Positions 4,003-15,367 of a stretch of 64,000 nt of DNA are shown piece after piece. The translations under genes were made by a program, and so were the position numbers. The stretch is from Macrostomum lignano (lineage: Eukaryota): contig NIVC01003467.1 of NCBI GenBank assembly GCA_002269645.1, forward strand, positions 32,441 through 96,440, in the 5' to 3' direction. The number at the start of each line of letters is the position of its first letter. The stretch's first letter is position 1. The notes beneath the pieces were generated by a model, which did not search any database, was not told where the DNA came from, and saw only the letters and a program-made list of their open reading frames with translations.

Positions 4003-7000
4003 TCAAGTCAGGAACTTGTGCTGCATCAGCTCCGATGCAGATTTTCGCATTTTTCTGTTCCTCTGGGTGCAGCAGCTGTAGAAGTCCTTCAGCTTAGCGG
4101 AGCAACCGTCTGGAAGGTCTGGGGCACCGTTTCTATCCAGCTGGACAGTCAGCTGCAGAAGGTTTTGAATGCTTGAAAATGGCCTCTTCCCGGATGTCAT
4201 CTGATAGAGCGAGCAGCCGAGCGCCCAGACGTCCGACTCTCTGCTGTACTTCGGTCTGGCTGAACCTTCCGGCGCCACCAGCTCCGGCGCCATGAAGTTC
4301 AACGTGCCTTTCGGTGTCGCGGCGGAAGCCGAATAGTGGCTGACTGACTCCTCCAGTTTGATTGACAGGCCGAAATCAATCAGCTTTATCCGGGTGTTGT
4401 CAGCGAGTACAATAATGTTGGCGCAGTTGATGTCCCTGTGGATCACAGGCGGCTGTTGGCTGTGCATGTAGTCCAGCGCGCTGCAGATCTGCAGACACAG
4501 GAGTTGATTAAATTGATCCGTCAGTTGACATGTATATGAGCCACATCCACAACAACTCACCTAAAAGTCAAGATCTTACCTGAGAGATGAATTTGCGGAT
4601 TTTCACCTCAGCGATAGGCTTCCCGCCGAGAAACCTCTCCATGCTGAAGCCTTCAAGCAATTCCATGAACACTACGACTTTAGAGGGGCCCGTATGAGCG
4701 ATGTGCAGGAACTTGACAATGTTGTCGTGCTTCAGCTGGAGAAGATTTCTCTCGCTGTTGATTGCCTTCTTCACATTTGCTCTTACCGTGCCTTGCTCGT
4801 CTCCGTGTTGCATAGGCAGCCTGAGAGTCTTGGCAACGCAGCGAACCCCAATGTCCGTGACAACATCGTGCACTGTTCCGCAGCCTCCGCTTCCTATTAG
4901 TCGTTTTACAGTCCAGCTTTCACGGTATGGAGGCCTAAAATGGAATCAAGAAGCTAGATGCTGTGGCTTTTTTATGCCAGTTAAACGTGAAATGCTGGCA
5001 AGCTCACCATACAAGTGAAAAAGTAACACTTACGGCAGTTGCAACGGCTCATCAAAGAATTTTCTCTTTTCGTACCTAAAAAACAGAAAAACAGCTATGT
5101 ATTTGGATGCAAGAACCAATCGAGGTGATAAGAACACGGTTTCAAAGTAATTTTTTTAAGAGGAAGGGGCAGTGTGCACCCTGGCGCACTTTACGCGAAA
5201 TTGTCACACAACGGGCGAGAGGCATTACTGCACTCATTCCGCCGACTCCCCTGAGCAGGCACACAAGCTCGCGGATACGTACGCAGTCATACGCACAGGC
5301 ACACACTCACACAGGAGTGTATAGCAGCCCTGACTTTATTTATAGTTAGGCATGTACACTTCACTGTGCCTTTAAAGTTGGCCCTCAAGGGCCTCGTTAA
5401 TTGCACGAGCAGAGCCAAGCCGAGATTTCAATTTACATGTAGCCCCAAATTAATGTGACTGCACTTGGAATCAAGCCTGGGCCGCCACGTTCACTTCAGC
5501 ACAACTTACTCTTCAAGCAACTGCGCCAGTTCGCTTCTGTCATTCATCTCTGCCAAAGCCAGAGCTGTTTGGCCTTTCCAATTCTTCATGCTCCAATCGC
5601 AACCCGCTTTTAGAAGAGTTCGACCAACCTCGGCAGCCTTGGCCGGAGGCGCCAGGACCGCCGCGAACATCAACGCCGTGTTACCGTTCGGACCTCGGAT
5701 GTTGACGGACGCCCCGGCGTCAAGGAGATCCCTGACCGCTGAAGAATGGCCACCACTGGCTGCCCAGTGCACGCAGCTGGCAGCCCACACGTCCGCGCAG
5801 GTGGGATCTCCTTCGCGCAGAAGCTGCTTCCACAGTTCTGAATCTTCGGAATTGCTGAAAACAGCTTCCCGCATCAAGATGGTTGCGCCTATGCGGTCAG
5901 GCAAGTCGCAGCTGCAACGGGTGACAGCTTGCTGAAGTCTGGCAAAGTCGCCTGTCTTGGCGAGCTGTTCCAGCTCCTCTCTAGCAGTGAGATCCTGCAA
6001 GAGTGAATATTTCAGATTAACACGATTAAAAGCAACACTATAATTACAGACATATGAGAAAAATATTTGCAAAGTCACGCAGAATGTCACTCACCTGTGC
6101 AGACAGGCCAGAAATCAGACCATTCTGATCTAAAGTGAGGTACATTTCCCTGAAAAAAATAGTTGACAATTTTCAAATTTCAGTTGACTTACTTCAAAGG
6201 GAAGAAAGAAAGAATTTTGTTTTATAGATTCGACTTCCAACTCACCGCACAATATCGCCCGCTAATTGACTGTTTTTGTTTTTCAACGCAATGTCCAAAG
6301 CTGTCCGGCCGTCGACATTTTTCGCACTAAGTAGCTTTTCTCTCTTGGAGTTTTTACGTTCGCTGCACTCACTGAGTCTTCGCTGCCGGAGCAGGTGTAG
6401 CAGGTGCTTGGCGCATCTCCTGCTGCCGCTCTTCACCGCCTCCATCAGTGGAGTGGCGCCCTGCTGGTTCGGCAGCCACTTCGCATGGAACGGCAGCAGC
6501 GCCAACAGCCGCACGTGGTCCCGCCGCGCCGCCAGATGAGCAGCCGTGTCTCTCGCCCTGTCAGTTACTTTTGCATCTGCACCCAGGTGTAACAAGTATA
6601 GTATACACTTTTCAGCCTGTACAGGAGTCCATGGAGAGTCCGCGATGAGCATGAGCACGGTCTTGCCGGCATCTCTAGAGGATACCAACTTTCTGGTTGC
6701 CCACTTCCGCAACTCGTTGTAATCACCACGGATTACCAACTCTGAAAGTCTCTGTAAATTTAAAATTACTTACTTACTTACTTACTTACTTACTTACTTA
6801 CTTACTTACTTACTTACTTACTTACTTACTTACTTACTTACTTACTTACTTACTTACTTACTTACTTACTTACTTACTTACTTACTTACTTACTTACTTA
6901 CTTACTTACTTACTTACTTACTTACTTACTTACTTACTTACTTACTTACTTACTTACTTACTTACTTACTTACTTACTTACTTACTTACTTACTTACTTA

Positions 7001-12700: not shown

Positions 12701-15367
12701 ATGTGGGCAGCTGCCAACAAGGAACTGAATGATCCGGAATTGTGGGCTCGCCTGCTGCAACTGGCTGATGCCACCTGCGCAGCGGTGTCAGGAGAGAGCT
12801 GTCTGCATCGGGCAGCTGGCAGCGGTAGCCCCATCGCAGCTAATGCGCTAATGGATGCTGGAGCGTCATCAAACAGCACAGCCCAGTTCGGACTCACACC
12901 CTTGATGGTGGCGGCCAGTGCGGAGAGACTCAGCAATGCTGACGCGGTGGGCTGGGTTCTGCTGTCTGCCGGATCTGACTGGACGGCCATCGAACGAAAG
13001 GGCAGGACTGCCTTGAACTTGGCTACTAAGAATCCGTATAGATCTGACGGATTAGTTGAGCTGCTGAGTGGGTAAGCTGCCAATTTACTCATTTGAAAAC
13101 GTAATCTAAAAAATGAAAGCCGCTAGAAGTTACGGTTGTATCGATGCACATTTTTCGGAAGTCCACGTTTGCTCAAAATTGCATGAACAGTGTTGGCCGG
13201 GTCATAGCATTTATCTCGACGGAATCAAGATTCAAATCTGATGGTGGTTCCGTTGATGCAGAGTATTACAGGTCACAACTCTTGCAACATGAAGGGGTGG
13301 CGCATACCAGTACAGTAACCCGACTTCGGCGATGTTGCATTTTGGCCGACGTTTTCGAAGTCCATCTACGACGCTAGAAAATAAAAATTTTTACATTGCG
13401 TCGACATTTGACCGACATATTTCAGGATGTACGCCCCACGTTTCAGCAGAGTTAGTCAAAATAATCTGGTGTAAGGATTCTTCGGCCATAATCTCAGATG
13501 AATTCGTTCGTTTCGATGCAACCAAATACCCAAAACACCAAATGCATTTATCAGTATGCTTATACGAAATCTATTGAACCTTAGCACGATATTTAATAAT
13601 ATATGATGCACATGCATAATCTCCATGCAATGCAGATACGATGGAAAGGGTTACTTCGACGAGCCGATTGAACCACCGTGAGTTGACCTTTGTAATTTTG
13701 TTACAAAACAATACAACACTGCATTACTTACAACACTGCATAGAGGGTTTCAAATAAATATTATAAATATAAAAGATGAAAGCTCATAGTTTGTCTCGTG
13801 TCACATATGCATGTCACTTGTTCCGCCACATAGTTGGTCACTAAAAAACGTCGTCCGTACGGGTCATGACACCTGGCGTGAAAATAACAAACAAAACTGT
13901 ATTTTATTGACAAACATTTCAGCAAACCCTTTTGGAGGAGTTGGTCCAACAAGATTTTGCTCGGACGTGGCGGCTTCGGTGACGTTAACGAAGTGTTCAC
14001 CGACAGAGAGGTCAGATGCGTCGCAAAGACTCTCAGATTTCCCATACAGTTGGGAGACGATCGTCACGTCTTGTCTGAAAAAGTTAACAAAGCAGTTGAA
14101 AGCGAGAGGAATATGTGCTTACTATGGCATGAGAACATCGTCCGATTCATGCACATTGCTCAGCAGGAGCAAATAACGGTTGTGATATTCATGGAGCTCC
14201 TTAGTGGCCAGTCATTAGAAAGGTTTCTTCAAGAAAAGCCCCTAGAAGAAGCTACGACTAGGAAGTTCTGCACACAGGTAAGAGAATCGGATTTTGTTCA
14301 CACGTCTTTTTATAAACTATAGAACAGTCAGGAACCTGGGGAAAGTTTTTATGGAGAGTGAATAGAATTCAACCTTATATAAAACTTCTCAGATTCCGCA
14401 GCGGGGTGCTGTACTTTGTTACCGCACACGACACTTTATTTGCTAAAAGTGCAAGCGTCCTTTAAACGGACTTTTGACGCATTTTAGCATATCGCATCTC
14501 TATAGGGAACCAGGGAGCTATAAATTGCTGTTTCAAAGTGACATTCAAGAGATTATTTATCAAACTGAAAGGTACATGTACACGTATGTATTCACCTCTT
14601 TCGAGATTTATTCTTTCGTATTTGGTTTCTCATATTTTTCGAACGACAGTTTATCCAAAATAATTGTAAGGTTGGAGATGAAAGGGTCCCCAATTTAAAA
14701 TTAAAACCCTAAATTACTGCATACATCGCTAAAGGGAAGATTAGCGTTGATGTAGCTCGTGTCATACCCCAGCTAGGCTGCACACTGTGAGATTGTTTCT
14801 GAGTATTAAACGTAAATGCAGATCACCATGACTGCTTTTCAATTTGGCTGGCAGATCTGCAGCGCTCTGGAGTACATGCACGGAAGACAACGGCCCGTGA
14901 TCCACAGGGACATCAACTGCGCCAACATTATTGTACTCGCTGACAACACCCGGATTAAGCTGATCGACTTCGGCTTGTCAATCAAACTGGAGGAGTCGGT
15001 CAGCCACTATTCAGCTTCCGCAGCGACACCAAAAGGCACGTTGAACTTCATGGCGCCGGAGCTGGTGGCGCCTGAAGGTCTGGCAAACCCGCGGTACAGC
15101 AGAGAGTCGGACATCTGGGCGCTCGGCTGCTCGCTCTACCAGATGGCATCCGGGATCAGGCCCTACGCTGGGATTAAAAACTTCCTGCAGTTGGCCTATC
15201 AGCTGGATAAAAACGGTGCCCCAGACCTTCCAGATGGTTGCTCTGCTCAACTAATTAACTTCTACGGCTGCTGCACTGCTAAGGATAGAAGAGAGCGCAA
15301 GTCTGCAGAGGAGCTGATGCAGCACGAGTTTCTGACGTCAAATTGGCACACTCTTGCAATCGTTTAA
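9706..15367 (+). CDS. Ankyrin-repeat + Ser/Thr kinase (STE/MAP3K-like) protein, paralogue 2
   Basis: Exons 9706-9732, 10959-11473, a 3n+1 linker exon (candidate 11525-11540, uncertain), 12581-13071, 13923-14277, 14855-15367. Intron phases match paralogue 1 and the N-lobe exon is 355 nt in both. Motifs GRGGFG, VAK, HRDINCAN, DFG, APE. Confidence 0.8.
9853..10032. repeat. 31-bp minisatellite (~6 copies) in intron 1 of ANK-kinase 2
   Basis: Unit GCTAAATTATAGTTGATAACTGCGATAGTTT. Confidence 0.95.
10550..10802. repeat. 15-17-bp minisatellite (~16 copies) in intron 1 of ANK-kinase 2
   Basis: Unit GTGCCATCTATAGGG(G)(G). Confidence 0.95.
12255..12530 (+). repeat. Diverged dispersed-repeat fragment shared with 32885-33135 (and inverted ~55660-55910)
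   Basis: Shared blocks TAGTCCCAGCAGTGTCCCTT, GACAGCAAAAAG, CAGGTAAGT...CCCC.TCTAGTCG and CTTGTCTCTCGCTG. Confidence 0.6.

Follow-up and report, generated by a model that had tools for sequence, protein, structure and literature searches.

Does a pair of divergent genes in the flatworm Macrostomum lignano, each joining ankyrin (ANK) repeats to a protein kinase domain, represent a new kind of signalling protein, and are the encoded kinases active? This question is raised by a 64,000-nt stretch of M. lignano DNA (hereafter the window, always at its full length), in which gene A lies on the minus strand and gene B on the plus strand. The window is the final 64 kb of the 96,440-bp contig NIVC01003467.1, by coordinate arithmetic, and its positions 1-16652 are 100% identical to this contig of assembly GCA_002269645.1 (Macrostomum lignano Mlig_3_7). 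The reading that we favour, and consider likely, is that A and B are paralogous genes for ANK proteins with an STE-like kinase, that they belong to a Macrostomum-restricted radiation marked by the motif HRDINCxN, and that their products are probably active kinases.

Seven-exon models of both genes, with canonical GT..AG sites, were built by reading the sequence (Table 1). Six coding exons per gene (exons 2-7) are firm and the first exons are candidates only; the intron phases are identical between the two models. In the guanine-cytosine (GC) profile of the window, exon-sized blocks of ~50% GC stand within surroundings of 35-39% GC. The open reading frames (ORFs) of both genes match Pfam ANK families at E 1e-13 to 1e-25 and, in the last exons, Pkinase at E 1e-34 to 1e-36. 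An initial annotation of this DNA had proposed that the stops which seem to end the ANK ORFs (5506, 6242, 11477 and 13075) sit inside splice donors. All four do lie within GT[AG]AG donors, the exons ending at 5510, 6246, 11473 and 13071, and the ANK modules and the kinase do belong to the same protein; overlooked were two micro-exons per gene, of 55 and 42 nt. The 55-nt exon is indispensable, as the phase is 2 at the end of ANK block 1 but 0 at the beginning of ANK block 2. Leaving out the 42-nt exon does not disturb the frame, and the junctions proposed earlier (5510/4934 and 13071/13923) thus keep the frame, yet they omit an exon that is included in the RNA-derived GenBank coding sequence (CDS) of gene A. 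Instead of the predicted products of ~640 aa, our models give 656 aa (A) and 665 aa (B) with the first exons proposed at that time, and A is annotated as 609 aa.

In each protein, ~10 ANK repeats form two blocks of five and are followed by a 14-residue linker and then by a complete kinase domain; the protein ends 2-11 residues past kinase subdomain XI, and Pfam finds ANK and kinase families only. An AlphaFold2 model built from a 17-sequence family alignment shows two blocks of ~5 ANK repeats (predicted local distance difference test score, pLDDT, >90) joined by the segment that the micro-exon encodes and followed by the kinase. The linker of gene A, YEKRKFFDEPLQLP, has YDGKIYFDEPLALP as its counterpart in the paralogues. 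PF00069 is matched over the whole kinase domain, with 169.4 bits in A and 160.8 in B at a gathering cut-off of 31.7. Both genes have the G-loop (GSGGCG in A, GRGGFG in B), CVAK, SERN, HRD, ..CAN, DFG and APE, none of which varies within the family, and an alignment with MEKK2 confirms the positions of the beta3 Lys and the alphaC Glu. As the initial annotation had noted, HRDINCAN and GTLNFMAPE are there, and so is SDVWALGC, which reads SDIWALGC in B. The signature 'HRDI.CAN' of that annotation, however, although present, masks the key oddity of these kinases: the catalytic-loop Lys of HRDxKxxN is replaced by Asn in both genes.

The GenBank protein PAA51304.1 (P0297; BOX15_Mlig033673g1, 609 aa), which is encoded on NIVC01003467.1 and belongs to the cluster of the best match, corresponds exactly to residues 48-656 of the gene A model and confirms all five junctions across exons 2-7, with both micro-exons. 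GenBank models of the M. lignano assembly were derived from RNA sequencing (RNA-seq) by StringTie/TACO and a de novo transcriptome, with boundaries set by trans-splicing and poly(A) data and ORFs by TransDecoder (PMC5730564). Since the model is RNA-seq-derived and the match is exact, a single mRNA of gene A contains both its ANK and its kinase exons. For gene B, a prediction from an older assembly (UniRef A0A1I8J198, P0017) agrees with 98.6% identity across residues 76-574 and contains both micro-exons. Transcripts overlapping repeat annotations were removed from the GenBank annotation (PMC5730564), and this filtering may be the reason why gene B has no GenBank model. The gene pair is partly public already, with gene A as a 'hypothetical protein'.

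That the two genes are decaying duplicates, or that our models falsely fuse separate ANK and kinase genes, is scarcely credible. The absent annotation of gene B would fit such a view, as would the ANK-only and kinase-only predictions in the family and the microsatellite that interrupts the N-terminal homology of gene A. However, the partial predictions often come from the older, error-prone assembly (e.g., the frameshifts of P0001), the ORFs of A and B are uninterrupted across six exons with conserved phases, and the ratio of nonsynonymous to synonymous substitution rates (dN/dS) is well below 1. For gene A the idea is largely refuted, as its RNA-derived CDS runs through both the ANK and the kinase parts. 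Moreover, the whole pair has a second genomic copy on NIVC01000859.1 (99.3-99.6% identity) in which the ORFs are kept; this copy is consistent with the known redundancy of the M. lignano assembly (PMC5730564).

In order to classify the kinase, Pfam scores, profile ranking, structural matches and phylogeny were compared. Pkinase outscored PK_Tyr_Ser-Thr (PF07714) with 169/161 against 114/124 bits for A/B, i.e., by margins of 55 and 37 bits. Ranked against the Protein Data Bank (PDB), the family profile matched MEKK2 best (123.7 bits over the whole domain), followed by WNK1 (120) and ASK1 (117) and then, in order, by WNK3, PAK1, TNIK, SLK and MKK7; no TKL kinase occurred among its best 60 PDB matches, and the Foldseek kinase matches agree with this STE-like ranking. 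Single-domain scores against the family profile fell from 400-575 bits for the own (Asn) subfamily to ~300 bits for caspase-linked members, 180-227 bits for a Lys-containing sister subfamily, 150-180 bits for hydrozoan ANK proteins with a MAP3K2/3-like kinase, 139 bits for a plant MAPKKK, 123 bits for vertebrate MEKK2/3, 116 bits for WNK1, 92 bits for a CAMK and 54 bits for an ANKK1-like TKL kinase. TKL membership was therefore rejected, in agreement with the initial annotation, the ANKK1-like kinase reaching 54 bits against 120-124 for MEKK2. The assignment to a MAP3K type stands as the nearest similarity and goes no further than that: WNK1 comes within 4 bits of MEKK2, and in a neighbour-joining tree (200 bootstraps, WNK1 as a partial sequence) the nodes joining the flatworm clade to other kinases reach 5-21%. 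By sequence comparison, then, the kinase is an STE-like (MEKK/WNK-like) orphan clade and not a TKL kinase.

The closeness of these scores also brings in a WNK-like rather than a MEKK-like ancestor of the kinase domain, which we regard as unlikely but not negligible. The C-lobe of WNK1 scores 120 bits against 124 for full-length MEKK2, PP[IV]IHRD[LI]xCxNI and FMAPE are common to WNK and the flatworm family, and the HRDIKCSN of the sister subfamily resembles the HRDLKCDN of WNK. Yet the beta3 Lys, whose absence defines WNK kinases, is present here (CVAKTL) and aligned with that of MEKK2 (AVK), so WNK membership itself was rejected. The beta3-alphaC insert resembles that of MEKK2/3; hydrozoan ANK-MEKKs, plant MAPKKKs and MEKK2/3 all outscore WNK1, and the partial WNK1 sequence falls outside the clade in the tree.

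Full-length and kinase-only searches both returned dozens of M. lignano paralogues and then fell steeply to generic ANK proteins and kinases. When 1.84 billion representatives were searched exhaustively with the profile, every taxon-labelled match above ~180 bits (single-domain) was from M. lignano, and no one-to-one orthologues were found elsewhere; the other matches above this level were a contig of an RNA-seq assembly (P0167), a metagenomic protein (P0210) and a metagenomic exon-like ORF (P0204). The proposal of a lineage-specific family was thus well founded. The motif H[RN]D[ILV]NCxN occurs in 61 retrieved sequences, with the Asn invariant, whereas a sister M. lignano ANK-kinase subfamily (n=29) has HRD.KC.N, mostly HRDIKCSN. 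In the tree the Asn subfamily is monophyletic at 90%, with caspase-fused proteins inside it, and joins the Lys subfamily at 76%. Its hallmarks are two ANK blocks joined by an EMRLxxxxxGxISGLT micro-exon, a YxGKxYFDEP linker and an HRDINCxN kinase, all of which are present in A, B, P0003, P0005 and P0006. In the literature on the Macrostomum kinome we found no description of this ANK-kinase family.

Family architectures include ANK-kinase, ANK-kinase-caspase, kinase-ANK-caspase, Ras-ANK-kinase, tandem kinases and ANK-only units. Three paralogues of the Asn-subfamily clade (P0138, P0027 and P0019, the last at locus L002) are fused to Peptidase_C14 caspase domains, in the order kinase-ANK-caspase in P0138 and ANK-kinase-caspase in P0019. 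The caspase motifs SHG/AHG and QACRG are kept in P0138 and P0027 and both absent from P0019. A caspase-fused paralogue, as an M. lignano caspase whose pro-domain resembles a protein kinase, and platyhelminth ANK-caspases were reported by Krasovec et al. 2024 (PMC11463336), in which the ANK-kinase family itself is not described. In our 64-kb window, tblastn with P0019, P0027 and P0028 detected no caspase exon and no further family member, only ANK and kinase parts being matched. On contig NIVC01000414.1 (L001; 1-17300 and 22598-22894) a same-strand tandem array holds two kinase-less ANK1-ANK2 units, P0003 as one complete ANK-kinase gene, and an isolated piece of a kinase C-lobe. Two RNA-seq contigs (L003/L004, Logan SRR28338164/3) encode an 877-aa ANK-kinase with HRDIKCSN. 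An exon-like ORF in a JGI metagenome (L008, 3300040801, positions 923-1468) has HRDINGNN, is 46-50% identical to the gene A C-lobe and begins at the position of the exon-7 boundary.

Several points weigh against the reading that we favour. Gene B has no GenBank model at its locus, and the identifiers Mlig033673 and Mlig005338 and those of the paralogues gave no match in the M. lignano literature covered. The starts of A and B have several candidates on sequence grounds, and the deep nodes of the tree are weak. The kinase N-lobe is poorly modelled (pLDDT ~50). Any link to cell death is a hypothesis that comes through paralogues only, as A and B have no caspase exon. Above all, the missing catalytic-loop Lys could mean low or no activity.

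If this loss abolished phosphotransfer, A and B would be pseudokinase scaffolds, with a nucleotide-binding but inactive fold that assembles complexes in the manner of ILK or RNase L. We think this unlikely, though it has some claim to attention, as the change from Lys to Asn is invariant in the subfamily and an N-terminal ANK domain with a C-terminal pseudokinase is a known design. With the full-length model, Foldseek retrieved mainly designed ANK proteins and RNase L, the latter as the top full-length match. Its TM-score is only 0.27, however, and as far as the model goes the match reflects domain order only, with no shared KEN domain or 2-5A site; RNase L-like membership was rejected, no KEN domain following the kinase. 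Pseudokinases usually lose several catalytic residues, whereas the others are invariant here across dozens of paralogues, and dN/dS in the catalytic core is 0.03. Furthermore, LIMK1 is active with HRDLNSHN, the same Lys-to-Asn change (PMC8750758, PMC10000741).

By analogy with LIMK1, the A and B proteins are probably active Ser/Thr kinases, possibly with dual specificity. Their ANK domain would probably recruit partners or substrates, or restrain the kinase, and activation would proceed via the conserved Ser/Thr-rich activation loop (SVSHxSASxxxPKGT). Since close paralogues are fused to caspases with intact SHG/QACRG motifs, the most likely setting would be lineage-specific stress, cell-death or immune-type signalling. 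A bolder proposal is that the HRDINCxN ANK-kinases and their caspase-fused paralogues with intact SHG/QACRG form a Macrostomum-specific signalling system of regulated cell death or immunity, in which recognition of a partner or ligand by the ANK domain would switch on the kinase and, by proximity, the caspase; this we consider quite unlikely. If true, the system would correspond in function to RIPK/DAPK-type modules but rely on an STE-like kinase whose catalytic loop is LIMK-like, and its diversity would stem from gene conversion and from tandem and inverted duplications.

A local inverted duplication gave rise to A and B, which are more closely related to each other than to any other family member (sisters at 98% bootstrap; 58% identical overall). 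At the nucleotide level, 85% of exon 7 is identical in inverted orientation (4007-4492 versus 15336-14851), with ~93% over the first 300 nt, whereas the other large exons reach 57-68%; the only similarity between the two loci detected by megablast is an inverted match of 489 bp. Synonymous divergence (dS) is 0.24 in the core from HRD to APE, 0.9 in ANK1 and 2.4 in ANK2, and is saturated in the kinase N-lobe. Both copies are under purifying selection, with dN/dS of 0.03-0.36 throughout. Because dS is low in this core and high elsewhere, exon 7, which carries it, was most likely homogenised by gene conversion or recent exchange between the inverted copies. Elsewhere, a less closely related paralogue at a different locus has the same exon with 80.6% identity, and the homogenisation may therefore be family-wide.

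The initial annotation had placed the starts at ATGs 7248 and 9706, ~2.5 kb apart. No other candidate between the genes is ATG-initiated, phase-0 and GT[AG]AG-terminated, but by our estimate ~2 such candidates per strand are expected by chance, and the gene A ATG is missing from the CDS of PAA51304.1, whose first codon is Met48 (window 6652). What looks like a donor at 7206 is the opening unit of a (TTAC/GTAA)110 microsatellite that lies directly upstream of gene A exon 2, and the two candidate first exons have no similarity to each other. Homology to paralogue N-termini extends 9 nt beyond the gene A acceptor, at which point the microsatellite interrupts it, and no exon homologous to these N-termini was found between the genes beyond those 9 nt. 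The region between the candidate first exons (7249-9705) has no side-to-side similarity and no family exon; its GC is 0.35-0.38, compared with ~0.5 in the exons. In M. lignano the last three nucleotides of the spliced leader are ATG, and [T/C]TNCAG marks the trans-splice acceptors (PMC8629364). Since the exon-2 acceptors TTACAG/AGA (6751, A) and TTTCAG/TTA (10959, B) fit this motif in phase 0, an AUG supplied by the leader would be an equally good start for both genes; for gene B the in-exon ATG 10923, which gives 668 aa, is an alternative. Thus, as the ATGs that define it are at chance level and do not appear in the RNA-derived CDS, the 2.5-kb spacing is unproven, and the divergent orientation alone is certain.

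Is an ANK protein with an STE-like kinase unprecedented in metazoans? It is not. The closest relatives outside Macrostomum are hydrozoan ANK proteins with a MAP3K2/3-like kinase (150-180 bits), P0310-P0312 from Hydractinia symbiolongicarpus, Clytia hemisphaerica and Hydra vulgaris and the metagenomic P0210, and the premise that metazoan kinases with N-terminal ANK repeats are only of TKL or pseudokinase type has to be abandoned. The hydrozoan proteins share the order of N-terminal ANK and C-terminal STE11-type kinase, but differ in having ~3 ANK repeats, a length of 460-520 aa and a canonical loop (HRDIKSAN in P0210). In the tree they cluster with MEKK2/3 (69% bootstrap), apart from the flatworm clade, and for this reason the ANK-kinase fusion may, on sequence evidence, have arisen independently in hydrozoans and the flatworm. 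An intronless ANK+MEKK-like gene of the hydrozoan type was also found in ENA ERZ17091519 (L007, 704-2131).

With these results, an interpretation of the pair along the lines of the initial annotation, as an unprecedented metazoan ANK-STE11 ligand 'sensor' with a shared 2.5-kb bidirectional promoter, appears decidedly improbable. The kinase is indeed STE-like and not TKL, the genes are divergent and the family is restricted to Macrostomum, all as this interpretation holds. Against it stand the hydrozoan proteins, the chance-level ATGs absent from the RNA-derived CDS, and 5' flanks without similarity, and no ligand-binding feature that would speak for a sensor role was found. Nor is the head-to-head layout, taken at first as an unusual architecture, a family trait, since the members of the array on NIVC01000414.1 lie head-to-tail.

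The features of both genes and of the surrounding sequence are collected in Table 1.

Table 1. Exons of genes A and B and other features of the window (window coordinates).
Feature	Position	Strand	Remarks
Gene A candidate exon 1	7207-7248	-	ATG 7248 of the initial annotation; candidate only
Gene A exon 2, ANK block 1	6246-6751	-	Pfam ANK; acceptor TTACAG/AGA at 6751, phase 0
Gene A exon 3, 55-nt micro-exon linking ANK blocks	6095-6149	-	EMYLTLDQNGLISGLSAQ; in PAA51304.1 and P0001
Gene A exon 4, ANK block 2, ~5 repeats	5510-5994	-	Ank_2 E 2e-25; AlphaFold2 pLDDT >90; PAA51304.1
Gene A exon 5, 42-nt micro-exon, linker	5034-5075	-	YEKRKFFDEPLQLP; AG/GTAAGT, phase 2 to 2; PAA51304.1
Gene A exon 6, kinase N-lobe	4580-4934	-	G-loop GSGGCGTV, beta3 Lys CVAKTL, alphaC Glu SERN; PAA51304.1
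Gene A exon 7, kinase C-lobe and stop TGA	4003-4488	-	Pkinase E 1.9e-36; AG acceptor; PAA51304.1; end of gene
Gene A exon 7 motifs	HRDINCAN 4440-4417, DFG 4377-4369, APE 4290-4282	-	
Microsatellite (TTAC/GTAA)110	6766-7206		TRF
Gene B candidate exon 1	9706-9732	+	ATG 9706 of the initial annotation; candidate only
Tandem array 5' of gene B exon 2	9847-10032		31 nt x 6
Tandem array 5' of gene B exon 2	10538-10800		16 nt x 17
Gene B exon 2, ANK block 1	10959-11473	+	Ank_2 E 4e-21; acceptor TTTCAG/TTA at 10959; ORF open from ATG 10923; 97.7% identical to L006 copy
Gene B exon 3, 55-nt micro-exon	11604-11658	+	ELRLSVDRSGFIHGLTES; in UniRef A0A1I8J198 (P0017)
Gene B exon 4, ANK block 2	12581-13071	+	Ank_2 E 2e-19
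Gene B exon 5, 42-nt micro-exon	13636-13677	+	YDGKGYFDEPIEPP; fits family linker consensus
Gene B exon 6, kinase N-lobe	13923-14277	+	GRGGFGDV, CVAKTL, SERN
Gene B exon 7, kinase C-lobe and stop	14855-15367	+	Pkinase E 8e-34; HRDINCAN 14903-14926, DFG, APE; end of gene
Antisense ORF over ANK exon	12577-13092	-	
Antisense ORF over ANK exon	5465-5935	+	
Antisense ORF over ANK exon	6404-6648	+	
Retroelement remnant	16123-18384	+	233-aa ORF; 515-aa ORF, RVT_1 E 8e-10
33-nt unit repeated over ~1 kb	19646-20641		
Palindrome arm	26004-43620	+	~18 kb
Palindrome spacer	~44-45 kb		GC 0.22
Palindrome arm	62828-45074	-	~18 kb
TTC21/IFT139-like exon	38285-39982	-	
TTC21/IFT139-like exon	48447-49367	+	

The long antisense ORFs over the GC-rich ANK exons are most likely by-products of codon composition and not genes. 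Immediately 3' of gene B lies a retroelement remnant, in which an ORF without a Pfam match precedes the reverse transcriptase ORF. Further along, the window contains an inverted duplication, a palindrome whose arms are 98.0% identical over 10,060 nt, the identity going down to 88-96% toward the centre; its spacer is AT-rich and has tandem arrays with a 21-nt period on its flanks. Since the palindrome ends ~1.2 kb from the contig end, it may be a fold-back artefact of long-read assembly rather than a real palindrome. Each arm carries one TTC21/IFT139-like exon (Pfam ARM_TT21_C, E 3e-67, and ARM_TT21_5th, E 1e-17).

As M. lignano is a transgenic, RNAi-tractable model of regeneration and stem cells, its dozens of ANK-kinases, some of which carry what look like active caspases, could be relevant to cell death, stress or immunity. 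Asn is invariant in one subfamily and the Lys is retained in its sister, which amounts to a natural experiment on a catalytic-loop residue that is otherwise familiar chiefly from LIMK. Lineage-specific expansions of multidomain kinases are common in invertebrates, and current understanding is not overturned. It can be concluded that the gene pair is real, was correctly spotted and now has an improved exon structure, and that it is of specialist interest and unsurprising in kind.

Compared with known systems, the family resembles MEKK2 and MEKK3 in the beta3 Lys, the alphaC Glu, a beta3-alphaC insert of similar length and the xDIWxxGC of subdomain IX. It differs from them in the N-terminal part, which is PB1 and not ANK in the MEKKs, and in the loop (HRDIKGAN there, HRDINCAN here); the identity is ~25-30%, and no supported phylogenetic grouping joins them to the flatworm clade. 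WNK1 and WNK3, which score 116-120 bits, are similar in the catalytic-loop region (PPIIHRDLKCDNIFI versus PPVIHRDINCANIIV) and in FMAPE. In WNK kinases, however, the beta3 Lys is absent, with Cys in its place and the catalytic Lys moved to the G-loop, and they have no ANK repeats, whereas the flatworm family has both the Lys and the repeats. LIMK1/2 likewise bear Asn at the position of the catalytic-loop Lys (HRDLNSHN) in an active kinase, but they have LIM/PDZ domains and a TKL-type kinase and show no sequence affinity to the flatworm family, as judged by its best 60 PDB matches; the common Asn is convergent.

ILK, TNNI3K and RNase L have the same domain order as A and B, with N-terminal ANK repeats and a C-terminal kinase or pseudokinase. 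These are of the TKL or pseudokinase type, and in RNase L a KEN nuclease domain forms the C-terminal part. RIPK4 and ANKK1, which belong to cell-death/immune signalling families, also combine ANK repeats with a kinase, but in the reversed order (kinase N-terminal) and with a kinase of the TKL type. Of the kinase-caspase kind reported by Krasovec et al., P0019, P0027 and P0138 share the ANK block and the kinase with A and B, which differ in that they stop directly after the kinase.

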